Shown here one piece after another: positions 5,842 to 55,651 of a stretch of DNA of 64,000 nucleotides. Both the position numbers and the translations under genes were made by a program. The stretch is from Macrostomum hystrix (Eukaryota > Animalia > Platyhelminthes), in contig CATNEN010000041.1 of NCBI GenBank assembly GCA_950097015.1, positions 2,170,001 to 2,234,000 on the forward strand, read 5' to 3'. The notes below the pieces were generated by a model. It had not been told where the DNA came from and searched no databases. It saw only the letters and a list, made by a program, of their open reading frames with translations. The first letter of the stretch is position 1. Every line of letters starts with the position of its first letter.

Positions 5842-5890
<49 letters not shown>

Positions 5891-7787
5891 CCAGCTCCAT
5901 CGACCAGAGCCTGGCCTCAAGCAACAACAGCCGGAGCAGCGGCGGCAGCGGCGGAGGCAGCAGCACCCTGGAGAAGAAGAAGAAGGCCTCCCTGCTGAGA
6001 AAGCTGCACCTCAAGTCCGGCAAGGACGGCACTGCGGGCAGCCTGGACAGCTGCGAGTCTGTCCAGCAGCAGCAGCAGCAGCCGCCCTCCGAAGACGCGG
6101 CCTCGGCCGGCAACCTCTCCGACTCGCACGTCGCCGTGCCAACCTACGAGGCAGTGCAGCAGCTGGACATCCGCCTGGCCCGGCCGGTCATCATCCTCGG
6201 CCCGCTGAAGGACCAGCTTAACGACGCCCTGATTGGCCAGTTCCCCGACCGCTTCAGCAGTTGCGTCCCGCACACCACCCGGCCGCCGCGCGACGGCGAG
6301 ACCGACGGCCGGGAGTACCACTTCGTGGCCAGCCGGGAGCAGATGGAGCGGGACATTGCCGAGCACCTGTTTATCGAGGCCGGCCAGTACAACGGAAACC
6401 TGTACGGCACCAGCGTCAATAGCGTCCGGCGGGTGGCGCAGAGCGGCCGTCATTGCATCCTGGACGTTTCCGGCAACGCCATCCGGCGTCTGGAGGCGGC
6501 CGGTTTGCCTCCCATTGCCATCTTCGTGCGCGCCGCCTCGCTGGAGAATCTGGCGCAACTGCGGCGCGGCCTGAGCGAGGAGCAGGCCAGGAAACTCATG
6601 GACCGCTCCGCCCGCACCGAGGCCGAGTTCTCCGCCTATTTTACAGGTGAGGCGTCCGGCTGGATGACTCATCCTTAATTTGCTTGTTATACCCTCAGGC
6701 TGACCCAAAGTCTTCCCCTAACCCTCAGGCTGACCCAAAGTCTTCCACTAACCCTCAGGCTGACCCAAAGTCTTCCACTAACCCTCAGGCTGACCCAAAG
6801 TCTTCCCCTAACCCTCAGGCTGACCCAAAGTCTTCCACTAACCCTCAGGCTGACCCAAAGTCTTCCACTAACCCTCAGGCTGACCCAAAGTCTTCCACTA
6901 ACCCTCAGGCTGACCCAAAGTCTTCCACTAACCCTCAGGCTGACCCAAAGTCTTCCACTAACCCTCAGGCTGACCCAAAGTCTTCCACTAACCCTCAGGC
7001 TGACCCAAAGTCTTCCACTAACCCTCAGGCTGACCCAAAGTCTTCCACTAACCCTCAGGCTGACCCAAAGTCTTCCACTAACCCTCAGGCTGACCCAAAG
7101 TCTTCCACTAACCCTCAGGCTGACCCAAAGTCTTCCACTAACCCTCAGGCTGACCCAAAGTCTTCCCCTAACCCTCAGGCTGACCCAAAGTCTTCCACTA
7201 ACCCTCAGGCTGACCCAAAGTCTTCCCCTAACCCTCAGGCTGACCCAAAGTCTTCCACTAACCCTCAGGCTGACCCAAAGTCTTCCACTAACCCTCAGGC
7301 TGACCCAAAGTCTTCCCCTAACCCTCAGGCTGACCCAAAGTCTTCCCCTAACCCTCAGGCTGACCCAAAGTCTTCCCCTAACCCTCAGGCTGACCCAAAG
7401 TCTTCCCCTAACCCTCAGACTGACCCAAAGTCTTCCACTAACCCTCAGACTGACCCAAAGTCTTCCCCTAACCCTCAGACTGACCCAAAGTCTTCCCCTA
7501 ACCCTCAGACTGACCCAAAGTCTTCCCCTAACCCTCAGACTGACCCAAAGTCTTCCCCTAACCCTCAGACTGACCCCAAGTCTTCCCCGGATTCTGTGGC
7601 CGGTCCCACACGCTCTCCAGATTCAATTGAGTGTGCAGCCAGTCACTGCCACCCATCCACCCCCTGATGCCTTTCAGCAACAGTTTCCGGCCAGTCATTC
7701 GATGAGATCTTCTCCCAGGTGAAGCGGGTCATCGCCGCCCAGTCGGACCGGCCCGTGTGGGTCACCTGCCGAGATGAGGATATCTGA
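2859..7787 (+). CDS. DLG1: Discs-large MAGUK scaffold (PDZ3-SH3-HOOK-GK), 5' end probably outside or unresolved
   Basis: Exons 2859?-3165 (Pro-rich, ends ANLPR, phase 2), 4285-4573 (PDZ: [22 protein letters not shown]), 5406-5720 (SH3: [19 protein letters not shown]), 5821-6646 (HOOK plus GK: [38 protein letters not shown]) and 7678-7787 ([32 protein letters not shown] 7785-7787). All GT-AG junctions are phase-compatible. PDZ1/2 are not seen, so the first exon boundary is less certain. Confidence 0.93.
3207..3473. repeat. Minisatellite, 51-bp unit, about 5 copies (DLG intron)
   Basis: Unit CTGGATCCAGCCCGCATTCTGCTGGCTGTGACCCCCCAGCAGTGTGGCCTC. Confidence 0.93.
4070..4233. repeat. Minisatellite, 18-bp unit, about 9 copies (DLG intron)
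   Basis: Unit GTCTGTCCACCTACTCCT. Confidence 0.93.
4628..5332. repeat. Minisatellite, 29/30-bp unit, about 24 copies (DLG intron)
   Basis: Unit GACCCAATCTGAGGATCTGGGGAGGTTGAA with a 29-bp variant. Confidence 0.94.
5836..5889 (+). repeat. Coding CAG/CAA trinucleotide tract (18 Gln) in the DLG HOOK region
   Basis: 18 consecutive CAG/CAA codons after VNFNS in exon 5821-6646. Confidence 0.92.
6691..7588. repeat. Minisatellite, 30-bp unit, about 30 copies (DLG last intron)
   Basis: Unit ACCCTCAGGCTGACCCAAAGTCTTCC(A/C)CTA. Confidence 0.96.
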
Positions 7788-9738: not shown

Positions 9739-12700
9739 TCAGGCCCACAGGCACAGGTGGCGGGCCCTGTCACAGGTGGCCACACAGCCGCCGCCAGGGT
9801 GCCAGGAGACGCCGATGATGGTGGCGGCCTGCGATTGGTCGGGCTGCAGGCGGGCCTCCAGCTTGCCGCTGACGGCATTCCAGACGAACAGCTCGCCGTG
9901 CTCCGTGCCAGCGGCGGCGTACTGCCCGTCCGGGCTGAAGGAGCAGCCTGCGTGGTCCAGGCCGATGTGAAAGCCGTCGGCGCGGAGGTCGTGCAGCTGC
10001 AAGCGGGATCGCAGGTCCAGCACGCAAAGCTGGTCGTCCCGGGTGGCGGCCAGCACCTGCGGATTGCGAATCGGACGACTGCTTGCTGTGCCTGGGAGGG
10101 CGAGTAAGTAAACAAGCCAGTTGCTCACCTTGAAGCCGTCCGTCGCCACGTCCAGGCCAGTAACCTTGCCGGCCAGCTGCATCTCCCCGACGCTGCTCTC
10201 GCCTCGGCAGTCGTACAGGCGGACCTTTTTGTCAAAGTGGCCGCTGACGATGAGGTCGTTAAGGCTAGGAGACACGGCCAGGTCGTTGCAGGAGGAGCCG
10301 GCGAACACAGTCTTCACGCAGGCCCGGCTGCGCAGGTCCCACAGCTTCAAGGTGCGGTCGTGGCTGCCCGTCACTAGGCGGTTGCTAAAGCCCAGGAAGC
10401 CGGCCGCAAGCACCTGGTGGAGGGGAGCAGGGAAGCGCTACTTAAATAAGTCTGTCTAGAAAGATTGCAGTTAATTATCTTCAGTGTCAGTGTGAGCGCA
10501 GTGTGAGCAGTGGAGCTTGAGCCCTATCACAGCAGTGAGGTGTGCAGCAGGCCACACCTTGTTGCTGTGTCCAGTCAGGCATGCTCGCATCCGCTGGTCT
10601 GCGTAGCTCCAGACCCGCACAGCGAAGTCGCTGGAAGGCGCGGCCAGCAGCTGGTCCTCGGAGTCAAAGCACACGCTGTTGACGCTGGCGTTGCTGCCAG
10701 TGAGGCAGCCGCGCGACTCGAAGCGCCCGCCGCTGATCGCCCAGAGCTTCACCTTGCGGTCGGTGCCAGCGGTGGCGAGTAGTCGGCCGGAGGGCGACCA
10801 TCGGACTCCGTTGACTTCGCCTTCGTGTGCGGCGTCCATCGCACAGTCCAGCCGGCGAGGCAGGCAGACGACGCCTCCGCCGCCGCTGTAGCCGGGCGAT
10901 GCGTCGCCGCCGGACGCGTCGAGGTTAACGGTGACGGGCTCGTTGGCCGCCTCCTCCAGCTCGCGGCGAACTCGCTCCTGGCGTCAGGGAGGGGCGGGTG
11001 GAATGGCTCGAAATGATGCGGGCCACCTGAGCATCTGGCACGGTGGATATCACCTGAGGATCTGGCAGGGTGGTAGCCACCTGAGGATCTGGCAGGGTGG
11101 AAGCCACCTGAGGATCTGGCAGGTTGGAAGCCACCTGAGGATCTGGCAGGGTGGTAGCCACCTGAGGATCTGGCAGGGTGGTAGCCACCTGAGGATCTGG
11201 CAGAGTGGTAGCCACCTGAGGATCTGGCAGGGTGGTAGCCACCTGAGGATCTGGCAGGGTGGTAGCCACCTGAGGATCTGGCAGGGTGGTAGCCACCTGA
11301 GGATCTGGCAGGGTGGTAGCCACCTGAGGATCTGGCAGGGTGGTAGCCACCTGAGGATCTGGCAGGGTGGTAGCCACCTGAGGATCTGGCAGGGTGGTAG
11401 CCACCTGAGGATCTGGCAGGGTGGTAGCCACCTGAGGATCTGGCAGGGTGGTAGCCACCTGAGGATCTGGCAGGGTGGTAGCCACCTGAGGATCTGGCAG
11501 GGTGGTAGCCACCTGAGGATCTGGCAGGGTGGTAGCCACCTGAGGATCTGGCAGGGTGGTAGCCACCTGAGGATCTGGCAGGGTGGTAGCCACCTGAGGA
11601 TCTGGCAGGGTGGTAGCCACCTGAGGATCTGGCAGGGTGGTAGCCACCTGAGGATCTGGCAGGGTGGTAGCCACCTGAGGATCTGGCAGGGTGGTAGCCA
11701 CCTGAGGATCTGGCAGGGTGGTAGCCACCTGAGGATCTGGCAGGGTGGTAGCCACCTGAGGATCTGGCAGGGTGGTAGCCACCTGAGGATCTGGCAGGGT
11801 GGTAGCCACCTGAGGATCTGGCAGGGTGGTAGCCACCTGAGGATCTGGCAGGGTGGTAGCCACCTGAGGATCTGGCAGGGTGGTAGCCACCTGAGGATCT
11901 GGCAGGGTGGTAGCCACCTGAGGATCTGGCAGGGTGGTAGCCACCTGAGGATCTGGCAGGGTGGTAGCCACCAGAAAGGCTAGCTGAGAAATTCTCACCT
12001 GCTGCTTCTTCAGCGCCTCCTCGTTCTGCTTGTTGACTTTGGTGGCCAGCTTCCCCTTGTGCTCCATCCAGCGCTGGATGAGGTCGGCATTCTCATCCGC
12101 CAACCGCTTCATGCTGGCCTCAATTTGATTGTAGGCCAGCTGGTTGGCTTGCAGCTCATCCGTGAGGGTCTGGTTGGTGTCCCGCAGTTGCTCGACGTCC
12201 AGGCGAAGTCGCTGCAGTTCGTCCTGCAGTTCGGCGGCCCGTCGCTTCGAAGCCAGCAGCTGTGCGTCGCGAGACTGCAGCTCGCGGTCCTTCTCGTGCA
12301 GATCACTGAGCAGCGCGTGCAGCTGGGTGTTCAGGCGGTCCTTCTCGCGCAGAAACTCCAGCTCGCGCTCCTGCAGGGCCCGCTGCTTTTGCTCCATCAG
12401 CTGGGCGGAGAGGCCGCCGCTCTTCATGCTGCAGTTGGGACAAATCATAATAAATAAATAATCAACTACTTTTACTGAGAAGTCTTGGATGCGACTATCC
12501 ATTAATAGGCATGCTGCATGTGACAATGGCACCTAATCAGGATTCAATAGGCCACAGAGCATGCTGCATGTGACAATGGCACCTAATCAGGATTCAATAG
12601 GCCACAGAGCATGCTGCATGTGACAATGGCACCTAATCAGGATTCAATAGGCCACAGAGCATGCTGCATGTGACAATGGCACCTAATCAGGATTCAATAG

Positions 12701-17536: not shown

Positions 17537-18242
17537 ATTGCTGCTACCCATGCAACACCTTTGACAACATCCTTTTCTAGGTAGGATACTACTACACTGT
17601 CTGAGCATATCATAACTGAGTGGCTTGTTGGTTGTCTAGTTGGCTGTTACTCATTAAAATATAAAAAAGTTGTTATCTTCATAATATAATCAAATGTTCA
17701 AAACAATGAGGATTGACAAATGTTATCTAATTAGGCCTAATCTATCATATATCGTGTATAAAATGAAACATAGATTGAGTTGCTTGCTAAGATTTCCATG
17801 TAATTTATTTGCCAATGCACTCTTATAAAAACTCTAGCCTCTGAACTATTGAGAACTGTGATCTATCTTAAAGTCACTGGAACTGCAACTACAGTTGAGT
17901 CTAGCTGCTTAGGAGAGGCAAGCAATGTTAAGGGCAACCAGATCACAAGACACAAGGTCTTCAATTTAAGCTGGGCCTAGGCTGCTGGCCTGGTCACGGG
18001 CACTGGCTTTGGCGAGTGGTCAGTCCATATAGCTTCAGCTCTTACTTGTCCTTGCTTGCGTGAGCCCTCCAGGATTAATGATACGGATTCAGTAACATTA
18101 TAGACCAGCTAGATAAGCAATATCTGAGAAAAGGTGTCATCCCCCCAGACAGCTGTCATGCTTAGCTAACATTTGTTAAATTGCAGTGAGCCGCCTGGCA
18201 GCTGAGCCGCAGCCCAGCCAGCCCTTCAAAGCTCTCACAGCC

Positions 18243-21200
18243 ATGATTGGCGGTCTGTTCATTTACAACCACAAGGGCGAGGTGCTTATCTCCCGGGTCT
18301 ACCGTGATGACATCGGGCGCGAGGCGGTTGACGCCTTCCGCGTGAATGTGATCCACGCCAGGCAGCAGGTGCGGTCCCCAGTCAGCAGCATCGGCCGCAT
18401 AAGCTACTTCCACGTGAAGCGCGCCAACATCTGGCTGTGCGCGGTGGCCAAGAAGAATGTCAGCGCCTCGCTGGTGTTCCAGTTCCTCTATAAGATGATC
18501 GAGGTCATGATGTCATACTTTGGCAAGATCAACGAGGAGAACATCAAGAACAATTTTGTGCTCATCTACGAGCTGCTAGATGAGCTGCTGGACTACGGCT
18601 ATCCGCAGAACACGGACACCGGTGTGCTCAAGACCTACATCACCCAGCAGGGCATTAAGGCCCAGACCAAAGAGGAGACCACGAGAATCACCAACCAGGT
18701 ACAGCTGAAAGATGCCAATATGTCTGAGTGCCAGCAGTTTATAAAAGTAAAAATATTTGTACGAGCTAGGCGGGCAGTGGACCCTGGCACATCAGTTCGT
18801 GACGGTAAACCCGCAGCCAGCAAAGCGCAATTCTACCCTTTCCGCTGGCTCCTGAATACTTGCACGTCTATACCGTGCTTTTTAATTGTCAGGCAGCACA
18901 CATGTACTAAATTAATGTGACCTCGCGACGCATTCGAGCTCAGGATGCCTTAACCGCTGCTACTCAGCACCGGCTCCTCAAACCACCCGGCCTGCAGTTC
19001 ACCGGCCTCCTAAACCACCCGGCCTGCAGGTCACTGGCCCCCAAACCACCCGGCCTGCAGGTCACTGGCCCCCCAAACCACCAGGCCCCCAAACCACCAG
19101 GCCCCCCAAACCACCAGGCCCCCCAAACCACCAGGCCCCCCAAACCACCAGGCCCCCCAAACCACCAGGCCCCCCAAACCACCAGGCCTCCCAAACCACC
19201 AGGCCCCCCAAACCACCAGGCCCCCCAAACCACCAGGCCCCCCAAACCACCAGGCCCCCCAAACCACCAGGCCCCCCAAACCACCAGGCCCCCCAAACCA
19301 CCAGGCCCCCCAAACCACCAGGCCCCCCAAACCACCAGGCCTCCCAGACCACCAGGCCCCCCAAACCACCAGGCCCCCCAAACCACCAGGCCCCCCAAAC
19401 CACCAGGCCCCCCAAACCACCAGGCCCCCCAAACCACCAGGCCTCCCAAACCACCAGGCCTCCCAAACCACCAGGCCCCCCAAACCACCAGGCCTGCAGG
19501 TCACTGGCCCCCCAAACCACCAGGCCCCCAAACCACCAGGCCCCCCAAACCACCCGGCCCACAAACCGCCAGGCCCCCCAAACCACCAGGCCCCCAAACC
19601 ACCAGGCCCCCCAAACCACCAGGCCCACAAGCCACCCGGCCCACAAACCACCCGGCCCACAGGTCACCGGCCAGATCGCCTGGCGCCGCGAGGGCATTAA
19701 GTACCGACGCAACGAGCTCTTCTTGGACGTGATCGAGTCCGTCAACCTGCTGATGTCACCGCAGGGCCAGGTGCTGTCCGCTCACGTGTCCGGCCGGGTG
19801 CGCATGAAGTCTTACCTGTCCGGCATGCCCGAGTGCAAATTCGGCATCAACGACAAGGTCGTTCTGGAGAGCCGGCGCGGTGGCGGCGGCGCATCTGGCG
19901 AGGCCACAGGCGGCAAAGCCGGCCATATCGCCATCGACGACTGCCAGTTCCACCAGTGCGTGAAGCTGAGCAAGTTTGACACGGAGCACTCCATCTCGTT
20001 TATTCCCCCGGATGGCGAATTCGAACTCATGACCTACCGCACCACCAAGGACATCAGCCTGCCGTTCCGGGTGATCCCGCTAATGCGCGAGACTGGCCGA
20101 TCCGGCTTGGAGGTGAAGGTGGTGGTGAAGAGCAACTTCAAGCCCTCCCTGCTGGCGCAGAAGGTCGAGGTTCGAATCCCGACCCCGCTGAACACCAGCG
20201 GGGTGCAGGTGGTCTGTATGAAGGGCCGCGCCAGGTACAAGGCGGCCGACAACGCCATCGTTTGGAAGATAAAGAGGATGGGCGGCATGAAGGAGCTGCA
20301 GCTCAGCGCCGAGATCGACATGCTGAGCTCCACTGACAAGGCCAAGAAGTGGACCCGGCCTCCCATCTCCATGAACTTCGAGGTGAGTCTGATTGCTTTG
20401 TGTTTCCTCCTGCAACCCACCCATTGTCCCATCCTGCAACCCACCCATTATCCCATCCTGCAGCCCACCCATTATCCCATCCTGCAACCCACCCATTATC
20501 CCATCCTGCAAGCCACCCATTGTCCCATCCTGTAAACCACCCATTGTCCCATCCTGCAACCCACCCATTGTCCCATCCTGCAACCCACCCATTATCCCAT
20601 CCTGCAGCCCACCCATTATCCCATCCTGCAACCCACCCATTATCCCATCCTGCAAGCCACCCATTGTCCCATCCTGTAAACCACCCATTGTCCCATCCTG
20701 CAACCCACCCATTGTCCCATCCTGCAACCCACCCATTATCCCATCCTGCAACCCACCCATATCCCATTTTGCAGCCCACCCATTATCCCATCCTGCAGCC
20801 CAACCATTATCCCATCCTGCAACCCACCCATTATCCCGTCCTGTAAACCACCCATTATCCCATCCTGTAAACCACCCATTATCCCATCCTGCAAGCCACC
20901 CATTATCCCATCCTGCAGCCCACCCATTATCCCATCCTGCAAGCCACCCATTATCCCATCCGGCAACCCACCCATTATCCCATCCTGTAAACCACCCATT
21001 ATTCCATCCTGTAAACCACCCATTATCCCATCCTGTAAACCACCCATTATCCCATCCTGCAAGCCACCCATTATCCCATCCTGCAGCCCACCCATTATCC
21101 CATCCTGCAAACCACCCATTATCCCATCCTGCAGCCCACCCATTATCCCATCCTGCAACCCACCCATTATCCCATCCTGCAGCCCACCCATTATCCCATC

Positions 21201-32900: not shown

Positions 32901-33949
32901 TGAACGAATGCAGCAAGAGCTGATGGCTTATCTAAAAAGCTCTCTCAGCGCGAACTCTCAGCAGCAGTCAGGTATTTTCCCTGGAATGCCACTGCTTCAG
33001 CAGCAAAGCATCGACACTCTCATCACGATGATATTCACGACCAATGAAACCAGCTACCTAAGCTTAAATTACAAACTGAAGTTGAGCGCCACCGACCGCT
33101 GCACTCCAACATTGGTATTCGAGCGCCCACTTCACCCTCATCACATGGTGGTGCTGTACCTGTGTGAGTCCGTCTCGAGCTACTCGGATGCGCTCGATCG
33201 TGAGCGAATGTGCTGGCCGGGTCGGCTGGTCGTGTGCGACACGAGCACAATGCAGGTGATGTCCGTGAGCAGCACCTTCGATGCAGGCGCTCTGTACCTG
33301 CTTCCGGACGGAGTTCACTGCATCACGTACCGGTTGAAGGTGTTCAACATTGAGACGGGTGATCTGGTTCGTGATCTAGATCTCGAGGACTCCGTCATCC
33401 TCATCGACATGGTGGCCACTCCGGACCGTCGGCTGGTCATTGGACTGAGATACGAGGTCTTCGAAGCGACGAAAATGATCATTGACTACATGCGAGCAGG
33501 TGGTAGGCTGAAGTCAGCGGAGGCTCAAGAGTTCTGCAGTGAAACTGCTATCAGCAATTCAAAAACGATTCAGGTGAAAATCGCTTTTTGGATCATTTTA
33601 GTTCAGTGCAGAAATTTTGTTCAAACACTTTGTTATTTAAATCGCTTACCTTGTAACAGGCCTACAGCACATGTGACGGCTCGTTGTTGTTTAATTATCG
33701 TTTCGAGGCCGAGCCTATTGCCTTGCTGGTACCTGCCAACGATCGTCTGTTACTGCTCGTGAAGGATCACCCAGTTCAGCTTTATGAGATCCTTTCAGAT
33801 GGCCTTGATTTAAAAGAAAATTGGCCCCATAAGTCTCGGGCAAGCAAAGAGTTTCCTCAGGAACCAGAGTGCTTGGAGCTGATTACGGCTAATCTGAGGA
33901 CGGATTACATGGCCTACCTGAGTAAGTTTTACTTTTGACCCACAAATTC

Positions 33950-34694: not shown

Positions 34695-34813
34695 GGAAGG
34701 TGCTGGCACGTGGTCTGGCCCGGGTTGCCGACGTCCGACCATCAGATCCGATTGAGTACCTGGCCAGGTGGCTGTTGCAGTTCGTGGCTCATCGCGATGG
34801 ACCTGGGCATTGA
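34695..34813 (+). other. Terminal exon of copy A encoding a Dpy-30/RIIa-like motif
   Basis: Acceptor CCGCAG at 34689-34694, phase 1 matching the donor at 33921. Translates [39 protein letters not shown]-stop. Not in the ORF track. Confidence 0.8.
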
Positions 34814-35677: not shown

Positions 35678-38600
35678 ATGCAGCCTGCGTCAGCGCAGGG
35701 CAGCAACCCGCAACAGCAAAACGATGCCAACGACGTCACCGGTGGAACCCACAGAGAGGACTCCACCAAACCAAAAGGAGCACCAATGAGACCGCGACTG
35801 AGCAATCGGAGAACCCAGAATCTGCCGGCGTTTCTGCAGGGAGCGGTGCAACGTGCCGAGGCCCTCCAGGTCCCTCTCATGGCCGGTGAGATGAGCAACT
35901 TACCTGAGCGTAACTCCAGGACTGTTCGCGTCTTTATCAGCTCGACCTTCTCCGGTTTGATTTTTTCTCCGTTGCAAAATTTCTAACCAAATTTCAACTA
36001 GAAGAGTATAAATTTTTGCAAGCAAGCTTTTAAAACACACTGCAGACATGCATGTTGAACGAAACGTACTCATGCGGTACGTGTACCCGGAACTGAAGGA
36101 GTCGTGCCTGCTGAAGTATGGCCTGGCATTTCAGGTTGGATCGAGTTGTTGTCTATAAATCTGAATAAGCAAATTTTCCAATTACACTTAAAATAAAACA
36201 AATTCTAACCAGAGTTTGATTAGTTGAATAAAACTGCTGTCAGGCTGACAGAATCAGAAGTCTGGCAAATTACTCTTGTGAAAAAATATGGCCTAGGAAA
36301 ATTCCTGATACTCGTAATTTAGTCTAATTAGTCTATTGTTTGTCAAACCTAAATAAAAAAGTGCTAATTTGCTTCCTTACATGTATAACAATAGTAGCAA
36401 TAATATTTGCAGGAGGACTGTGGTGACTGGCACATAATTTGTTGACAGTCGACCATCAGCCAGCGACCTTGGTGAATTCCGCACACACGCACACAGATAT
36501 TGTACACAGGCACTCACTCGCTAAGGGGTGTACATCTGCATTGACTTTCTCATCGTCAGTCAGGTGTGCACTGTCACATGCCTTGGAGGTTGGCCCTCAA
36601 GGGCGTAAATTGCACGAAGCCGCCAAGCCTTCTATCCACGGCTGCGCCCCAAATGAATATGGCCTCGCCGCGGAATCGAGCTCAGGGACCTCGCCACGAG
36701 AGACAAACGCTCTGCCACTCACCCTCTTCCTAACATCATTAGCCTTGCACTGGGACAGTTGCTTGCCAACGGCCTCGAAAATTCCTTCCATCGCGTTCTT
36801 GCAGATCGTAGACATGCGCTGGGGAATTCAAGACGGGGCCTCGCTGGACCAGATGGCATCCGAGATTTGCTTCCGCGAAATTCAGCTGTGCCAGGAAACG
36901 TCTGTGGGACCGCACTTCCTGGTAAACAGCGATTTTCACTGTGATTTTTCTCCCGAGGATGCCCTCTGGCGCTCAAAACAATTCTTAGAAATATCCTTCA
37001 AATTCTACTTAGGTGATCTCGTATCTGAACTTATCCGATGAGTAGCTTAGCTTACAACGTGCTTAGTAACCTGAAAAAACATCTTGGTGCCCGCAGGCCC
37101 TTCTGGGGCATCGCTACGGTACAAAGAAATTACCATATACCGTTGAAAAGACTGTCCTGGACAACCTTATGCAGCAGATGAGCGACACTGCTGCACTTGA
37201 ACTAACAGAGAAATGGTATCGCAAAGATGATAACCAGCTTGAACCTGTGTATGTGCTGCAGCCAGTGCTTTTAAGTCCCGCGTCCGGCAAAGCAGCTACT
37301 TTCACTTGGGAGAAAGAAGAGAAGATGCTGCTCAACATTTTGGAAAATGCGTCTCGAGAAGCCGTCAAGTCTGGTAAAATTGACGAGGCAGAAGCGCTAG
37401 TATTTTGCTCATCGGTGACTGACCAAGAGGTGACGAAAGGAATAATAACATGCAAAGCCGACAGACGTCCGGACACGCTGCTGTGCATCAGGGAACTGAC
37501 TGACGTGCGCGACTTATTAAAGAGCGAAGTAGCTGATGTTTCCAGGTTTATTGAGACAACGATCGATGGGCAAGTTAACGAAAGCACTGTCCAAAGACTC
37601 GAAGAAATAAAAAGCTGTCTAAAGTCAGGCGCTATCCCATGCGAAAATATTATGGAGTACAAAACTACATATGGATCAGTAGCTGACACTGAAAGTATGA
37701 CAAGAACTGAATATGAAACAAAACTTGCAGCAGACCTGAAGCTCCAATTGCAAATACTGATTGACAGAGCAATCGAGAGAATCTCTGAGCTAGAGTCCGA
37801 CAGTCTGTACTCCGAGGTGTTGCAGCACTCGCACCAGTGTGTCAGCTCTGTCCGTCAGTTCCAAGGACGAGAAGACACAATGAGCCAGGTGAGGAGATAC
37901 ATCGAGAGTGAAGCCAGACACCCGCTCATGATTCACGGAGCCTCCGGCTGTGGAAAGACGTCGGTGATGGCTCGAGCTGCAAATCTCGCTCGACAATGGC
38001 TTCCCGAATCCGACAGAGAAGGCGCGATCGTGATCATCCGATTCCTCGGAACGAGTCCGTCGTCATCCAGCATCCGTCAGACACTGCGCTCGATCTGTCA
38101 ACAAATGGCTGTTGTCTTAGGGACATCAGAAGTGACTGACAGCATTCAGGAAATCGATTTCAGAGAGATTGTGAACAACTTTTACAAGCTGGCAGAGAAG
38201 CTCTGTCAACAATCTCGAAAGGTGTTAATCTTCCTCGACTCGGTTGACCAGCTTGATGCTTCAGACGGTGCTCACACACTGGGCTGGCTGAGACCCAACT
38301 TGCCGACTGGAATAAAGATTGTGCTCAGCTCACTTCCCGACATGTTCGACATTCTCGACTCGTGTCGCAGTCTTCTTCGAGACATTGACTCAAGCGAATG
38401 CTTTGTCGAGATTTGTGAGCTCAATCCGGAGCTGTGCTGTCACATTGTGAGAGACATGCTGACTGAGAGAGGTCGGTGTCTCACTGAGCCTCAGTGGTGT
38501 GTGTTGCGAGCTGCATTCGAAAAGTGCAGTCTCCCGATCTACATGAATCTCGTGTTCAACCAGGTGATGGCATGGAACTCGTACACTCCAGTAGACTCTC

Positions 38601-41600
38601 ACTCACTCGAGTACACAGTCCGAGGCGCGATCGAGCACCTGTTCAATCGTCTTGAGCGTCAGCACGGTCAGCTGCTCGTGTCTCACGCTCTCGCCTACAT
38701 TACCGCATCGAGGAGTGGTCTCGGAGAAGGAGAGATCGAGGACTTGCTATCGTTGGATGAGGAGGTTCTCGGAGAGGTGTTTGCGCACCACCTTCCGCCA
38801 TTCATCCGTCTTCCGCCATTGTGTTGGACTCGCGTTCGTCACGAGATCGGACCATACTTGGTAGAGCGCGAAGCAGACGAGGCTCGAGTGTTGACGTGGT
38901 ACCATAGACAGTTCTGGGAGGTGTGCCGCGATCGCTACTTCTCTAACGCAGAGTTCATGAGGCAGATGCACTCACGACTCGCGGACTACTTTCTTGGAGT
39001 ATGGTCCGATCGACCGAAGCCGTTCAAGTGTCCACCGAATCTGGCAGCAAAGCTGGCGAGACAGGTGAGTAACAAACGATCGTTAATGTGTCTGCAATGT
39101 TTATGAACTATTATTTTCTGACGTATACAAGTACAAATTTGTCTTCAGGGCACCCCTCCTCCGAGCGAAGCTGACAGACAGGTCCCTCAACAGCCTCATG
39201 TTCTTCAGCGAGACGACAGCGGATCAGTGCGCTTCAATCTAAGGAAGTTGAGCGAGCTGCCGTTCCACCTGCTCCGTAGCGGTCGCATTGATGACTTTCA
39301 TGATCACGTGACGTTCAACATGGACTTTCTCGAGTCAAAGCTGAGTGCCACATCTCACCACTTGCTGCTGCGAGACCTCCAGTTGTTCTTCGATGTGGAC
39401 GAGTCGGTCCGGGGTAGCGGATCCGACTCAGTAGACGCCGAGAGACTGTTCAATGCGATGAGGATCGCTGGACCGAGTCTGAGTCACAGTCCGTTGTGTC
39501 TTCCGGTGGACCTTTGCGGCCGGCTGAGATCATTCGCAGAGAGCTCGTCTCGGATTCGCAAGCTTCTGTCGGACTGCAGACATCGAGATCAGTCGACTTG
39601 CATATTGCCTCTGAACGGATGCTTTGACAGCGGCAGCAGCTACACGCACTGCGCAATTCAGAACCACTTGAGTGTGTCAAAGTTGTGCGAAAACAACAAG
39701 TTTTACACCATTGGGATTTCCGGTCTCAACGTCACGTGGTATGACCAAGACGGCGTCGTATGGAAGAGCGTGACCTGCGACAGGCTTCCCGTCTTGCATA
39801 TTGGATTGATGCCAGTTCTTTCCTCTAATGGTTGCTTTTTGACTGTTGACAAGGACATTACACAACAACATTTCAAGCTTTACAGAGGCAATCTGCTGAC
39901 AGGTGTATGGAAGTGTGTTCTTGATTTCATGCCGTCTGAAATTCCAGAGAACTTCTATAATTATCACGACCCTGTGCTTGCTGCTTGGGAGAATCACATT
40001 GTTCTACGCAGAGACAACTTTGATAAGATAGAGCAAGGCCTTTGCATCGTATTAAAACCATCGTTACCTACGAAAAGTGTTTGGCTCGTTGCGACGAAAA
40101 CTTCTCCACCGTTGCTGAGCAAGGATTTGTTTTTGTTTTATGTCGGATCACTCGTGCCGCCTTCATGGACTAGCGGCGACTCGTTTCAGCCTTCCTTTAG
40201 GCCCCGCGCGCTTGTTCTTGAAAACTTTCAAGAGGTAAATCTTCCCTCTTCAGAGTTTGATTCCGGGCTTTTAATTAACTTTAAGGCATTTGTTCGTGAC
40301 AATGATATTCTGCTTGTCACATCCAGCAAAGTGAGCCTTGAAAGCACAGCCATCGTCTTTACGATTCGTCGATTTGTCGTGGATGCTGCAAATGTTGTGG
40401 AGGACGTTTGCTCACAGGTCGAGTCTGAGCACGATCCAGGTGACAACTACAACGTCACAATGTCTCTCGATCGCATGACCATTGCAATATGTTTCACCTG
40501 CGTGAGAGAGAGCATGGGCTTTTTATTGAAGCTGCCCCACAGAGCATTCGTGCCTCTGGCTTTTCAACCGATTTTGCGGAAGTCAGTCGGCGTTGTGCTG
40601 TCCAAGTTCTCGAAGGTGCAGGCAAGCACTTTCCAGTTGTTCTTGAGTCACAATGGCGAATATCTGCTTTCGAAGACGCGAAGCCACTTCATGTTCAACA
40701 TTTGGTCTGGTCGTGACGGCTCGTTTCTGGCCGCGATCCCATTCTCGAGCCGCTTCTACTGTCTGGGCCAGATTCCCGGCACAGACCTGTTTCTGATCAA
40801 CACGATTCCTGTTAGCATTGCCAACTCCGCGTGCAATACGATCGTTGTGAATCTCAACAAGCTCGCCACAAGCTCGGCAATGCAAGGCAGCATAGTGACG
40901 GCCGAATGGTGCGTAGGCGGCACTTTCTCGTTCAGTCCTCATGAAAACAGTCTGGTGTCGTTCTACTTCGACAGACATCTTGGCGGCTCCGCTGCAGAAA
41001 TGAGCCTTGAATCAGGTGCCATGCAGGACATTCTGAAGCTGCCGCTTGAACTCTCAGACCCCACTGCTGAAGCGATTGATCAGATCGAAGCGAGATTTTC
41101 TCGCGAAATCAGCATGAAGCTGAAGAGTCGCAGTCTGCACCCTGACATTCGGGAGTTTGGTCTGGAGCTCTTCCAGGCACCGGGCAGCCTTCAAATGCGC
41201 ATCGCGGATGCCGAGACCGTCTTGAATGGAGGATTTGACGGAACTGACAAGAGCTTGACGAATGCAGTTTTCAATGTGAAGCATTTCTCAGGAGAGTATA
41301 AAGTGAATGACGTGACCGTTTCGGGGTCAGACATCTCTGATTTCATAAGCAAATTTTTGAACGAGAGAGGACTGAATTTCGTCATATCTAACCACAGAGC
41401 TCTGGATGCATTTCCTCTCAGCTACTTGATGGCGTCAGAACTGCCTCACGCGTTCAGCCGAACTTCAGTGCTGCCAGCCGTGCTCAGCACCGATGAGCGA
41501 AGGCTGCATCTTCTGCTGGTTGGGAATGCGAAGCCGCCAGCTCGGAGACCGGTCGACAGTGAACTGGCTGAAGTCGCAGCCCCAAAAGAGAGTGCAAACT

Positions 41601-43874
41601 CCGTTCCGAGCAGTTCCGAATCAGAGCAGTCTCGACTGCCAGAAGAGGAAGTTGGTGCCTATGGCAAGATCTGGGGCAGGGATTGCTCGCTTCTGTGCAG
41701 CGTGGATGTCGCGAATCGAGAGATGGACAAGTGCCTGAGTCTGCCAGTTTTGGAAGTCGGAGATGCCTTTATAAAGTTTGCAGGAAGACAGGTGGCCGTA
41801 GAGACTGTTAGAAAATCTGCTGAGAACTTTTTGCTGCTGCTTACGAATGCTTCATTCATGTGGACTAACTCTGATGGTGCAAGTCAACAGGAATTTGGTA
41901 TTTTTATTGCGCGCCATATATTCCAGCACATCCTTCATTTCATTCGACGCAAGCTCCAGGAATTCATGGCTGGAGCTCACGCAGACATTGACTTTTCGAC
42001 AAACGGCGAATTCTTGGCCCGTGAAATGAAAGCGTCTGTTAGCGATTATCTTCTTAAAACACCAGAAATTCTTGGAAAAATGATTCCGATCCAGCTGATC
42101 TCTCTGATTGACATGGATGAAATTGTAGAAAGAATGCTGTTTGCGGATCCAAGGATGAGCTTTCTGTCAATGAAGTATAACATCAAATTGAGCTCCACCG
42201 ACCGCTGCAGTCCAGCAATGATCCTCCAGCGCCCACTTCACCCTCATCACATGGTGGTGCTGTACCTGTGTGAGTCCGTCTCGAGCTACTCGGATGCGCT
42301 CGATCGTGAGCGAATGTGCTGGCCGGGTCGGCTGGTCGTGTGCGACACGAGCACAATGCAGGTGATGTCCGTGAGCAGCACCTTCGATGCAGGCGCTCTG
42401 TACCTGCTTCCGGACGGAGTTCACTGCATCACGTACCGGTTGAAGGTGTTCAACATTGAGACGGGTGATCTGGTTCGTGAACTAGATCCCGAGGACTCCG
42501 TTGTCCTCATCGACATGGTGGCCACTCCGGACCGTCGGCTGGTCATCGGCAAGCAACTGGAGATGCTTCGCGACCTGGAAACAATGGGTGACATTGCCAA
42601 GATTGCAAGCAATAATGACGAGAACAATCCGGATAGAGACAATTTTCTGTCGAGTCAGTCTACGCGGGGCTCAAGAGTAATTCAGGTAAGCTTGGTGTGT
42701 TGAAATTATGTTGCCTTACTTTTCTCATATACGGAAAGTTTCTCATTTTCTTGTACATTCGGGTTCTAGAAAACTTTTGATTTTGGCGAGATAAGTCCTT
42801 TCGCGAAATTCAATGATCGTAAAAGATATTTCTGAATTTCTGAATGCATCTAAGGCGACCATTGTACATTGAATGTCCACTAATATGTTTAGTTGGACTG
42901 TCAGCAAATTTATATATCTGGAATAAACTCAGAAAAATCATCTTCATTACAGGCCTACAACTCATTGGATGGCACTCTTGTTTTTAATTATCGCTTTGAG
43001 TTCGATCCGCTCGCCTTACTAGTACCGTCAAATGGGCGTTTGGTGATTCTGCTCAGGGACCATCCCATTCAGCTTTTCGAGATTGTTGATCCAACAGAGC
43101 GCTCTTCGGCTGAGGCAATCGAATCTGCCTTGCTGCGCATTGATTCGAAGAATGCCAATGCTGTGCTTGTGTCGGAAATTCTTAAGTCTGATTACCTGAA
43201 TTTTCTCAGTGAGTACCCCACACGGATCTTGTCTACGCATATTCTCTAGTATAGCTTGTAGAAGGCGCTATATAACAATTGGCCTGGCCTGCACAGTCAC
43301 AGTATTAGGGCTCAGCCAATGATGTTTGGGACTGGAGGGAACGCTTGTAGCTTGCGTCAGCTTGAGCGTCAATTGTGACCCAGGAGGGCCAGCCTCCAGG
43401 TCGCATTGGAGATGCGCGTCTGATGATGCGAAAGTTAGGACAGCCCTGAGAACACCTCTGTATGAGCGGATTCCGCAATTATCTTTCCTTGTTTGGGACA
43501 GGAAGCCACTTGTTCCGCGTGCTAATCTGGATTATTACTCAGTGTGTACCAAATTTTAACACCAATCGAGGGCGTCAATACGTGAACAATAGGGCGCTCG
43601 TAATTATAATTAGGGTTCCATATGTTACGGGTTGATTCTCAATAGCTTTCAGTCCTGATCGACTGAGCCATTAGAACTAGCATTGACGCTCTGCAAGTTA
43701 AATCACGGCATCCGCAGAGTGGATTATCGACGAATCAACTTAATTCCACTTGCAGAGTCGGTGCTGACCCAGGGACTGGCGCGCGTTGCCGAGTCGCGTC
43801 CACCAGACCCTATCGAATTCCTCGCTCGTTGGCTGCTACAGTTCGCAGCAGCTCAGTCCGCTGGACTGAATTAG
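35678..43874 (+). CDS. NWD1/NWD2-like STAND protein, copy B, intact, about 2120 aa (DUF4062-like, NACHT, propeller, Dpy-30 motif)
   Basis: Exons 35678-35954, 36046-36134, 36805-36921, 37097-39064, 39149-42685, 42953-43208 and 43756-43874. They sum to 6363 nt, all GT-AG with matching phases and no internal stop. Exon 2 and 3 sizes (89 and 117 nt) match copies A and C. Confidence 0.9.
36608..36726 (+). repeat. About 130-bp dispersed repeat, copy 2
   Basis: Aligns by eye with 26785-26912 in the same orientation. Confidence 0.65.
43756..43874 (+). other. Terminal exon of copy B encoding a Dpy-30/RIIa-like motif
   Basis: Acceptor TTGCAG at 43750-43755, phase 1. Translates [39 protein letters not shown]-stop. 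Confidence 0.82.
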
Positions 43875-52800: not shown

Positions 52801-55651
52801 GGACTCGGACAGTTGCAACAGTTTGGCGTTGATGTCATTATCACGATGCTCTTTGCGGCCAATGAAATCGACTTTCTTGGGTTGAAGTACAAACTGAAAT
52901 TGAGCGCCACCGACCGCTGCACTCCAACATTGGTATTCGAGCGCCCACTTCACCCTCATCACATGGTGGTGCTGTACCTGTGCGAGTCCGTCTCGAGCTA
53001 CTCGGATGCGCTCGATCGTGAGCGAATGTGCTGGCCGGGTCGGCTGGTCGTGTGCGACACGAGCTCAATGCAGGTGGTGTCTGTGAGCAGCACTTTCGAT
53101 GCAGGCGCTCTGTACCTGCTTCCAGACGGAGTTCACTGCATCTCGTACCGGTTGAAGGTGTTCAACATTGAGACTGGTGATCTGGTTCGTGATCTAGATC
53201 CCGAGGAATCAGTCATCCTCATCGACATGGTGGCTACTCCGGACCGTCGGCTTGTCATTGGGAAGCAGCATGAGCCGTTTGAAGTCATGACTATGATTGG
53301 CGACGCCATACGTGCAAGCAATCAGCCGAATTCTGAAGAGGCGCTGGAGTTTTTCAGTCCTTCTGTGGCCACAAGTTCAAAGATTTTTCAGGTCAATTTT
53401 GCGTGTTCATGATTTTTAACCTTTATTTCGCAATTCTACTTTAAAGGGAAAGCAAAACCTGTGCGAGGAGCATGAACATTCAAGCTTTTAATCACATTTT
53501 GGACCTTTGCGATGACTTAGAGGGCGTGGCATCGCTTCTATAAATCGCGATGACTTAGAGAGCCTGACCTTTATACGCTCGTGTTGTACCCAGGGCCCAA
53601 AGAAACGGCCTGGCTGGGCGACAGCCCGGGAGAGGGACCCTCTAGCTGGGACAACCCCGGTCCCACCTGCCTGTTCCCTTGACGACGCCACGAAAGTTCG
53701 CTGGCGCCGCCGCCCTGAGACCTGCGAGAGTTCGCGAGGACTCAGGTCCCTAAGCAGAGCGAGAGTTCACTCCGAGTGCCCGCGCGACGCCCGGAAGAAA
53801 CGGAAGCACACTCACGAGTCAGCCGGAGTTAGAGGTTGGGTGTATATTTGGTTGTATTGCAGTTCTATCGATTTATCGCACTGATGACCGTGACGTGAGG
53901 ACGTCGGACAAAAACAGGGGGTCGGTCCAGCTGCGGCTCTTTAAATATGCGGTGGGGCAGAGAAAGGAGGGGCAGGGACAGTGAGACTTTGTGCTACATG
54001 CGTGTCCAGCCAATCGCTGGGGCCAGGGCTGGAGCACGAAGGAACGGGGGAGGGTAGAAAAATAAAAGGGCACGCCAATCGCAGGACAGCAGAGGCAGGG
54101 AGGAAAGAAAAGGAGGGCAGGCCGCGCCAGGGGGTGGAGCATAAGCCCCTAACCCCTGGGTCAGCACACGGGGGATGGGCGCAGCTTAGAGCAAGGGACA
54201 AGAGAGAGGGAAAACTGTCACAGGCCTCGGGGGGAAGGGTTGGGCACGCACAACACTCGAATAAAGCGATCGTATATCAACCAGATGATACGCGAGCTGC
54301 TGATGGAGCGATGAACGATATGAACGATGGAGCGCATCTGCAGTAACCCCACTCGCCCATCACCAATTCCAACAGGCGTACAGCACATCGGACGGCTCGC
54401 TGGTCTTCAACTATCGCTTCGAGGCCGAGCCACAGATTGTGCTGGTCCCATCGAATGATCGCCTGTTGCTGCTTATCAAGGACCATCCGGTGCAGCTGTA
54501 CGAGATCCTCTACGGGTCGGATGGAAGCGAAGAGTCGCCAGCGTCCGATTCCAGATGTTCAGCGTCGGTTCCGTTGGATCCTGTGTGTCCCGACCCGGTG
54601 GCTGCAGCTCTTCAGACTGACTACCTCTGCTATATCAGTGCGTATCTACAAGATTAAGAGCTTTGGCAGTCTCACATTTGCCACATTTGTTGTATTTTGC
54701 TACCGTGCACGGGTACTAGGCCTCCAGTCTAGCTGTGGGCGGTGTATGCACAGGGTTTGAGTTCTGGACCACCCGAAGTTTACCATGAAAGAGAGGAGGA
54801 GGAAAGGGGGCCGGCAACCGTCGAGGCGTTCAGAAGCTTCAGGGTCGGGGTTAAATAATGGACAAGAAGTGTAAGGACAATCTAATTGTCTCGTAAATTT
54901 AACTGTTAACGTAGCCCTGTGAGCGGTTGGCCACTTGATAGGAAATAATTGGGCAGGATATACATTTGTAATTGGCAAGGGATTGGCGGACAGCCACTTA
55001 AATCCCTCTGAACTAAAGGTAATAAAGACAGACTAAGAGAATCGAAGCGTAGAAAAATAATGAAGTCGGTTTGATGGTCTCACAGTTTGGTGGTTAGTAC
55101 TTTCTAACTTTCTGTCTGTTTAGCCAGCTCAATAGACTGTTCCTCGTGCATAACGAAAAAACCGGCAACAGCGCGGAGGGAAGGGTCGCACAACGTGTCC
55201 TAAATATACTTACGAGACAGGAGGGTGGGCGCTTGGGCAGGAACTTAGGGCAGCAAGATAAATTGGGGCTGACCAATCAGGTGCCGACCCGGCCACGCAG
55301 AACCGGTTTGTGTCGGTCACCGGATTGGGGCTGGGGTTCGGGCTAAAGCCATACAGGGCTGAGGGTCGGGTGGGGCATGACTACGCAGAGCCGGCAACGA
55401 GGTTGGGGCCAGGGAGGAACTGAGACGGGGAAACAGGGCGAAACAAGGGCAAGGGTAAAGGATAATTAAAGGTAATCCACTATGCGAAGCGCAATCGATC
55501 GCAGTACAGCTCTAAAACTCCCTTTTCTTATTTTGCAGGAAAAGTGCTGTCTCGGGGTCTGGCCCATGTGGCCGACGCTCGGCCCGCGGATCCCGTGGAG
55601 TTCCTGGCCAGGTGGCTGCTGCAGTTCGCTGCACTGCGGCCTGTCGAATGA
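46885..55651 (+). CDS. NWD1/NWD2-like STAND protein, copy C, about 2078 aa if a +1 frameshift near 48139 is corrected
   Basis: Exons 46885-47128, 47507-47595, 47688-47804, 47895-49881, 49966-53391, 54376-54637 and 55539-55651. At about 48139 it reads GAGGCCGACACTG versus GAGGCGGCACTG in copy A (one extra base), which splits exon 4 into ORFs 47889-48329 and 48133-49923. This may be a true lesion or an assembly error. Confidence 0.82.
53460..54341 (+). mobile_element. Probable insertion (solo-LTR-like) inflating intron 5 of copy C
   Basis: This intron is 984 nt versus 86 and 267 nt in the paralogues. It contains a TATA-like CTATAAAT, an AATAAA near 54260, and GTGGGGCAGAGAAAGGAGGGGCAGGGACAG, which resembles the intron-6 element. 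No convincing TSD was found, so boundaries are approximate. Confidence 0.4.
55150..55460 (+). mobile_element. LTR-like dispersed repeat in intron 6 of copy C
   Basis: Homologous to the reverse complement of 33950-34400 (shared TAAATA...CGAGACAGG(G)AGGGTGGGCG, CCAAT and CGCAGAAC.GGTTTGTGTC blocks). Confidence 0.55.
55539..55651 (+). other. Terminal exon of copy C encoding a Dpy-30/RIIa-like motif
   Basis: Acceptor TTTTGCAG at 55531-55538, phase 1. Translates [37 protein letters not shown]-stop. Not in the ORF track in this frame. Confidence 0.8.

Follow-up and report, generated by a model that had tools for sequence, protein, structure and literature searches.

Three tandem genes on the + strand of a 64,000-nucleotide window of the Macrostomum hystrix genome (contig CATNEN010000041.1), here called copies 1 to 3, each end in a real Dpy-30 domain. 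These genes are very probably flatworm-specific relatives of NWD1 and NWD2 that carry a spliced C-terminal Dpy-30 docking-and-dimerisation (D/D) tail. Their products would be composed, in order, of an N-terminal DUF4062/TeTIR-like region, a NACHT domain, an NWD1-type winged helix, a large divergent propeller, a disordered linker and the C-terminal Dpy-30 D/D domain. By analogy with characterised domains of this kind, constitutive dimerisation and docking is the most likely role of such a tail on a nucleoside triphosphatase (NTPase) of the STAND class (signal transduction ATPases that have numerous domains). The combination of NACHT and Dpy-30 is already visible in the automatic Pfam annotation of UniProt entries from Macrostomum lignano; what is new here is the exon structure that splits the domain, the conserved intron, the presence of the tail in trematodes and the grouping of these proteins in a single flatworm clade. 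The literature searched contained no paper joining Dpy-30 with NACHT and none on Smp_145280, the Schistosoma mansoni gene model considered below, and the papers that pair Macrostomum with NACHT were irrelevant.

The Pfam Dpy-30 family (PF05186) belongs to the RIIa clan of docking/dimerisation domains and has a gathering cut-off of 22 bits. The last exon of all three copies, exon 7, lies well above this value (39.6-46.9 bits, E 4e-10 to 2e-12), the best being copy 2 (E 2.2e-12), which matches profile positions 13-41/42, while the RIIa profile itself gives a sub-threshold 18 bits. A six-frame scan of the 64 kb for the core RP.DP..[FY]L returned exactly three sites, which are the three exons 7, with one at the equivalent position of each paralogue. 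Full-length M. lignano proteins identified as relatives score 35.9-44.8 bits against PF05186, and in these the match widens to profile positions 2-38 or 8-41. Compared with solved structures, exon 7 of copy 2 is closest to DPY30 (29.7 bits, E 2.9e-6), followed by DYDC2 (28.4 bits) and DYDC1 (26.4 bits), with weaker matches to NME5, RSP2 and AK7. Assignment of the tail to either the DYDC or the DPY30 subfamily was considered and rejected: the M. lignano protein P0003 is nearest to DYDC2 and copy 2 to DPY30, and since the best match thus differs between the two, a domain of 40 residues resolves no subfamily.

The domain is divided between two exons. Exon 6 starts with AY..DG..FNY.FE in all copies and finishes with ..DY[LM]x[YF][LI] and one further base, followed in each case by a phase 1 GT donor at the same codon (GTAAGT, GTGAGT and GTGCGT in copies 1, 2 and 3). 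Intron 6 measures 773, 547 and 901 bases respectively, and the codon that it splits encodes R, K and R. Each exon 7 is directly adjoined upstream by a pyrimidine-rich tract and AG, is read at frame offset 2 (phase 1) and encodes the pattern [KS]VL..GLA.VA..RP.DP[IV]E[FY]LARWLLQF before a stop codon. The exon 7 frames have an upstream stop 11 to 34 codons away and none of the three contains an in-frame ATG between that stop and the motif; exon 7 is therefore translatable only if spliced to an upstream exon. In an alignment with the annotated M. lignano proteins, where the peptides of exon 6 and exon 7 were entered as rows of their own, the end of exon 6 falls on the DYLxYV of those proteins and a one-column gap, corresponding to the split codon, separates the two peptides. 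Between them, the end of exon 6 and exon 7 account for the complete Dpy-30 domain: the first part of helix 1 as well as the turn at RP.DP and the second helix. Pfam searches with exon 5 and exon 6 separately found no family. Exon 7 is confined to profile positions 13-41 and helix 1 begins in exon 6; the domain is therefore interrupted by the intron, and the last exon does not form a module by itself. We infer from these exon boundaries that the domain is put together by splicing of exon 6 to exon 7, whereby helix 1 would begin in exon 6 and be completed in the short last exon, which would also contribute the RP.DP turn and helix 2.

The tail is under purifying selection across the copies. Pairwise DNA identity between the copies over a 30-codon core is 68-78%, with proportions of synonymous differences (pS) of 0.47-0.73, of non-synonymous differences (pN) of 0.12-0.18 and a dN/dS of 0.07-0.18 by the Nei-Gojobori method, the silent sites being near saturation. 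The 150-base flanks on either side of exon 7 are alignable at only about 58-60%, and no Rfam match was found around the exon. The region of the three copies comprising NACHT and winged helix (NACHT-WH) is 99-100% identical in protein, as against the 68-78% identity of the tail exons in DNA, so that homogenisation of the copies stops short of their 3' ends. A preliminary description of this DNA, made from the sequence alone, had placed three terminal exons at these same positions, 0.55-0.9 kb downstream, in phase 1 and with a shared motif; it had named the motif Dpy-30 and had read the conserved protein and diverged silent sites as purifying selection, and on all of these points our measurements bear it out. 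Its further proposal of an exon-shuffled module is not supported in that form, given that exon 7 holds positions 13-41 only and that the intron within the domain is kept as far as Schistosoma.

The exons preceding the tail support the relationship to NWD1. NACHT (PF05729, 39.7-40.9 bits) and the NWD1-type winged helix (PF25469, 69.8-71.1 bits) are matched in all three copies, and the DUF4062 family (PF13271) is annotated in M. lignano P0001 and P0002, residues 22-145 of which match window exons at 35789-36921 and their equivalents by tblastn. Exon 5 ends with ..[IV][IF]Q at a phase 0 GT donor in all copies; when WD40 repeats were looked for by sequence in this exon, Pfam returned no family at a threshold of E<=0.01, and relaxing it to E<=10 added nothing relevant. 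Used as the query of a word search, exon 5 retrieved P0001 and P0002, for which the precomputed Pfam architecture is DUF4062, NACHT, HTH_NWD1 and Dpy-30, as well as P0003, a partial model annotated with Dpy-30 alone. The M. lignano proteins are at most about 54% identical to the window over long high-scoring segment pairs, and P0001 reaches about 65% over the NACHT-WH core. Among the best 120 matches to the NACHT-WH region, PF05186 occurs only in M. lignano rows, and the NWD1 and NWD2 proteins of molluscs, rotifers, annelids, nemerteans, cnidarians, hemichordates, amphioxus and arthropods present in that set are without the motif. The earlier suggestions that the upstream exons encode an NWD1-like NACHT STAND NTPase and that NWD1 and NWD2 lack Dpy-30 are thus in agreement with the profile matches in every copy and with the non-flatworm rows among those 120.

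A profile built of the last blade, linker and tail and run against 1.84 billion representative sequences found blade and tail together only in M. lignano (P0012, P0002, P0003, P0009 and P0124); P0129 and P0133 are M. lignano fragments matching the blade only, and the next matches are short DYDC2-like proteins. When the 60 C-terminal residues of P0007 were used for a word search, only P0007 and P0002 came back, a weak test given that its E-values are set for 5.8 billion sequences. Several M. lignano models are garbled: P0006 and P0010 have frame-shifted tails, and P0124, P0129 and P0133, which bear the UniRef names 'Anaphase-promoting complex subunit 1', 'Snurportin-1' and 'HECT domain-containing protein', are fragments or chimeras. 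The best long proteins from outside flatworms with a similar Dpy-30 domain are P0125 (Lamprigera yunnana, 662 aa), which has two matched stretches, the first scoring 60 bits on Pfam, and P0258 (Tubulanus polymorphus, 701 aa); the C-terminal halves of both look ankyrin-repeat-like. Three proteins from ENA metagenome assemblies (P0113, P0116 and P0119) are eukaryotic NWD-like NACHT-WH proteins of 1551-1768 residues that form a clade of their own in the tree described below and have neither a propeller match in Pfam nor a Dpy-30 tail.

The tail extends beyond Macrostomum. A small hidden Markov model made from such tails together with DYDC-like domains was run over 123 proteins (P0001-P0123), the flatworms sampled being Macrostomum and trematodes. 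It matched the extreme C-termini of trematode NWD-like proteins from Schistosoma spp., Paragonimus and Calicophoron, an example of which ends ..DYFEESGLTEMMKKAMFDVVDKRPIDPISYIAKSLL, and no protein among the 123 from outside flatworms. A phase 1 intron 14 residues ahead of RP is present in all three window copies, at the M. lignano loci L001 and L002, which are distant paralogues sharing the intron codon and phase, and at the S. mansoni locus L003. That an intron inside the domain keeps its position and phase as far as Schistosoma argues against both a simple shuffle of one exon and a recent origin. A maximum-likelihood tree of the NACHT-WH region (50 rows, 384 columns, IQ-TREE, LG+C20) unites the window copies, all tail-bearing M. 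lignano proteins and the trematode sequences in a single clade (support 100/100, stem length 0.45). This clade is apart from the NWD1 and NWD2 proteins of other animals and also from P0069, the M. lignano NWD2 orthologue, which groups with protostome NWD2 (branch support 100/99) and whose place among the lophotrochozoan ones is weakly supported (58-90). The NACHT-WH tree thus gives no orthology of the window copies with NWD1 or NWD2 of other animals. A member of the flatworm clade, P0033 from M. lignano, ends at the blade and is tail-less, either because the tail was lost or because the model is truncated. This distribution is most simply read as one ancient fusion in flatworms, after which the family expanded in Macrostomum.

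Structure prediction is consistent with the assignment of the tail. The peptides of the window exons were aligned with the M. lignano proteins and this alignment was used for an AlphaFold model of residues 1085-1206 of P0003, which has a mean predicted local distance difference test (pLDDT) score of 72 and presents four to five strands between residues 7 and 53, then a linker of low confidence and helices at 82-101 and 106-120. Averaged by block, pLDDT reaches 94-95 for residues 91-110 and 85 for 111-120, and the exon junction falls within the helix 82-101. Superposition of the tail with VIA-align gives RSP2 (7jtk_C; Z 6.3, 2.3 A over 45 residues), DYDC2 (8j07_c3; Z 6.0), AK7 (9d2f_D, residues 679-723; Z 5.8, 2.1 A over 45 residues, 31% identity), the RI-alpha D/D domain (Z 5.4) and, at Z 4.9, both the RII-alpha D/D domain and DPY30, the superpositions on RSP2, DYDC2, AK7 and DPY30 spanning 2.1-3.3 A over 44-47 residues, and the identities lying at 31-43%. 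The strands of the model align with a clathrin or WD40 blade (Z 5-5.7), and the Foldseek list for this C-terminal model contains propeller blades and DYDC2 or DPY30 chains. A second model, of the 446 residues ahead of the P0003 tail (predicted template modelling score, pTM, 0.67), consists of strands and a long helical insert and has 203 Foldseek matches at E<=0.001, the best 50 of the 203 being all propellers (such as Atg18, DCAF1, Apaf-1 and WDR5). The insert, of about 115 residues in four long helices, lies between blades at residues 822-937 of P0003 (model residues 123-238). On these models the C-terminal part of exon 5 is predicted to be a divergent WD40-like propeller with a helical insert.

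Several observations nonetheless weigh against the reading of these genes as NWD1/NWD2 relatives with a Dpy-30 tail. Foldseek on the small tail model found nothing at E<=0.001, the best match having E 0.29, and VIA-align Z scores of 5-6 are middling for helical pieces, their modest size being as expected at about 45 residues. The modelled fold is that of an M. lignano homologue, whose identity with the peptides of the window is 42-45% for exon 6 and 62-68% for exon 7. The trematode tails, moreover, are degenerate: Dpy-30 was the top Pfam family for each of the four that were searched, at 27 bits for S. turkestanicum and 18, 14.6 and 12.7 bits for the others, so that one of four exceeds the cut-off.

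Characterised Dpy-30/RIIa domains pair as a four-helix bundle that holds an amphipathic helix (PMC3494852, PMC8339350), and by analogy two of the flatworm tails would pair in the same way, with the groove of the bundle receiving an amphipathic helix from a partner. Joined in this way at their C-termini, these STAND proteins would exist as ready-made homo- or heterodimers, and heterodimers between the paralogues are plausible from the sequences because the hydrophobic core positions are alike in all three copies. The tail may in addition tether the proteins to a scaffold, as is the case for AK7, NME5 and RSP2 in radial spokes and for DPY30 on ASH2L. The identity of that scaffold is the subject of the first of the alternatives, which proposes that the tail docks the NTPases specifically onto axonemal scaffolds in ciliated cells, through an amphipathic helix of the RSP3/RSPH3 type found in radial spokes. 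An axonemal anchor had been among the suggestions of the preliminary description. The nearest neighbours in structure and sequence do include radial-spoke RSP2, DYDC1/2, AK7 and NME5, the top profile matches outside the family are DYDC2-like, and RSP3 is known to anchor Dpy-30 domains (PMC3494852). Against this, the best solved match of copy 2 is DPY30, the domain of 40 residues does not resolve a subfamily, and D/D domains are described as promiscuous (PMC3494852). As radial-spoke proteins are among the nearest neighbours, and DPY30 too, a link to cilia is possible by analogy, and we consider the axonemal proposal in its specific form to be rather unlikely.

To an equal degree unlikely is that exon 7 is an optional, alternative terminal exon, many transcripts reading past the exon 6 donor to give tail-less products, such that the tail would act as a regulated switch. 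Read-through of the exon 6 donor is indeed halted by a stop after 5-13 codons in every copy (after 13 in copy 2), and there are public models that end in this way or lack the tail, namely P0017 of S. mansoni, P0046 of S. japonicum and P0033 of M. lignano. The RefSeq model of the first (Smp_145280; GCF_000237925.1, NC_031502.1, L003:42947-45470) runs past a phase 1 donor after ..DYFEESGL and ends in the intron, and the S. japonicum model stops ahead of the tail. The tail-less models look, however, like annotation misses, for in S. mansoni the Dpy-30-like terminal exon is intact about 2.4 kb downstream of the donor and in matching phase; the read-through peptides also differ between the copies, in contrast to the strong constraint on the tail.

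Much less probable is that the tail represents an integrated decoy like those of plant NLRs (nucleotide-binding leucine-rich-repeat receptors), imitating a D/D protein of the host that a pathogen targets, and serving as a sensing surface and not as an anchor. The genes are indeed tandem and NLR-like, and the tail is at the sensor end; however, it stays conserved in a C-terminal half that otherwise diverges fast, and is kept in the trematode orthologues, and no animal precedent was found. A reading of the motifs as open frames arisen by chance, as a small gene in its own right or as relics in decay is suggested by their short length only and is already refuted by the Pfam E-values of 4e-10 to 2e-12, the occurrence of exactly three sites, one per paralogue, the want of an ATG, the dN/dS of 0.07-0.18 and an intron conserved across flatworms.

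The coordinates of the features that support the spliced D/D tail are collected in Table 1 together with those of unrelated neighbours in the window.

Table 1. Features of the three gene copies and unrelated neighbours in the window; a slash marks an exon boundary, and helices and blades are as predicted.
Feature	Position	Strand	Remarks
Guanylate-kinase domain, unrelated gene	5623-6678	+	185 bits
ATG16 domain, unrelated gene	10925-12532	-	69.5 bits
Clathrin-adaptor small-chain-like, unrelated frame	18186-18920	+	28 bits
Copy 1 NACHT and winged helix	28825-30051	+	Open reading frame bounds; Pfam
Copy 1 exon 5 equivalent, end	33573	+	GT donor
Copy 1 exon 6	33660-33921	+	Blade, linker, ..TDYMAYL; donor A/GTAAGT
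Copy 1 exon 7, Dpy-30 tail	34695-34813	+	PF05186 42.1 bits; split codon A+GG = R
Copy 2 NACHT NTPase and NWD1-type winged helix	37169-39106	+	Open reading frame bounds, not exact exon ends; PF05729 39.7 bits, PF25469 (HTH_NWD1) 70 bits
Copy 2 exon 5	39227-42685	+	About 1150 residues, no Pfam match; ends ..RVIQ, donor GTAAGC, phase 0
Copy 2 exon 6	42953-43208	+	Last propeller-like blade, variable linker, Dpy-30 helix 1 start ..SDYLNFL; acceptor cattacag/GCC, donor A/gtgagt; length 256 = 3n+1, one split-codon base at end
Copy 2 intron 6	43209-43755	+	547 bases, phase 1, inside Dpy-30 helix 1
Copy 2 exon 7, Dpy-30 tail	43756-43874	+	Rest of helix 1, RP.DP turn, helix 2, stop codon; PF05186 46.9 bits
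Copy 3 NACHT and winged helix	48133-49923	+	Open reading frame bounds; Pfam
Copy 3 exon 5 equivalent, end	53391	+	GT donor
Copy 3 exon 6	54376-54637	+	Blade, linker, ..TDYLCYI; donor A/GTGCGT
Copy 3 exon 7, Dpy-30 tail	55539-55651	+	PF05186 39.6 bits; split codon A+GA = R

Activation of STAND and NLR proteins is thought to proceed by induced oligomerisation of monomers, and to this scheme a tail for dimerisation and docking, built into the sensor end, would add pairing in advance and a fixed anchorage within the cell. As a tentative extension, flatworms may once, and early, before the split between Macrostomorpha and trematodes, have evolved NLR-like STAND receptors that are pre-paired and anchored by a C-terminal Dpy-30 domain, and the Macrostomum clusters, with their variable propellers and conserved tails, may produce mixed sensor pairs on a common scaffold resembling the A-kinase anchoring proteins; if true, this would be a docking logic that is not known from any STAND or NLR protein. 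The tail of about 45 residues also offers a small, defined handle for finding the partners of an opaque and fast-evolving receptor family, in a genus that is genetically tractable and with the same tail in schistosomes. The terminal exon that carries it is easily overlooked by annotation, as in the S. mansoni RefSeq model.

Comparison with known systems sets these proteins between several families. The family that includes NWD1 and NWD2 is described, in the preprint defining it, as TeTIR-NACHT proteins with WD40 or TPR C-termini, a D/D domain not being part of the description (bioRxiv 10.64898/2026.09.21.753143). With this family the flatworm proteins share a putative DUF4062/TeTIR-type N-terminal region, the NACHT NTPase, the NWD1-type winged helix and the propeller-like region that follows, the NACHT-WH part being about 37-46% identical to the NWD1/NWD2-like proteins of other animals; they differ in forming a separate clade with full support, in having a propeller that Pfam does not see as WD40 and in their C-terminal Dpy-30 domain. 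The domain type is shared with DPY30 and DYDC1/DYDC2 through the common motif Y-L..GLA..A..RP.[DN]PIE[FY]LA..L, extended in the case of DYDC2 by WL after LA... In those small proteins (99-177 residues) the domain is the main feature, and is N-terminal in DYDC, whereas here it terminates a protein of about 1,800-2,000 residues and its helix 1 is one residue shorter than that of DPY30, which is a chromatin and trafficking factor. The D/D domains of the protein kinase A (PKA) subunits RI and RII are of the same clan and fold, as the sub-threshold RIIa match reflects, but the flatworm sequence is of the Dpy-30 and not the RIIa type and is unaccompanied by cAMP-binding domains. D/D domains are also known to bind amphipathic helices so as to anchor effectors other than PKA, with RSP2/RSP23 on RSP3 and DPY30 on ASH2L as examples (PMC3494852, PMC8339350). 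The likeness extends to overall design in AK7 and NME5, which are large catalytic proteins with a Dpy-30 D/D domain at or near the C-terminus (the NME5 match is at residues 150-193 of 209). These Dpy-30 enzymes are docked in radial spokes, and their catalytic part is a nucleotide kinase where that of the flatworm proteins is a STAND NTPase.

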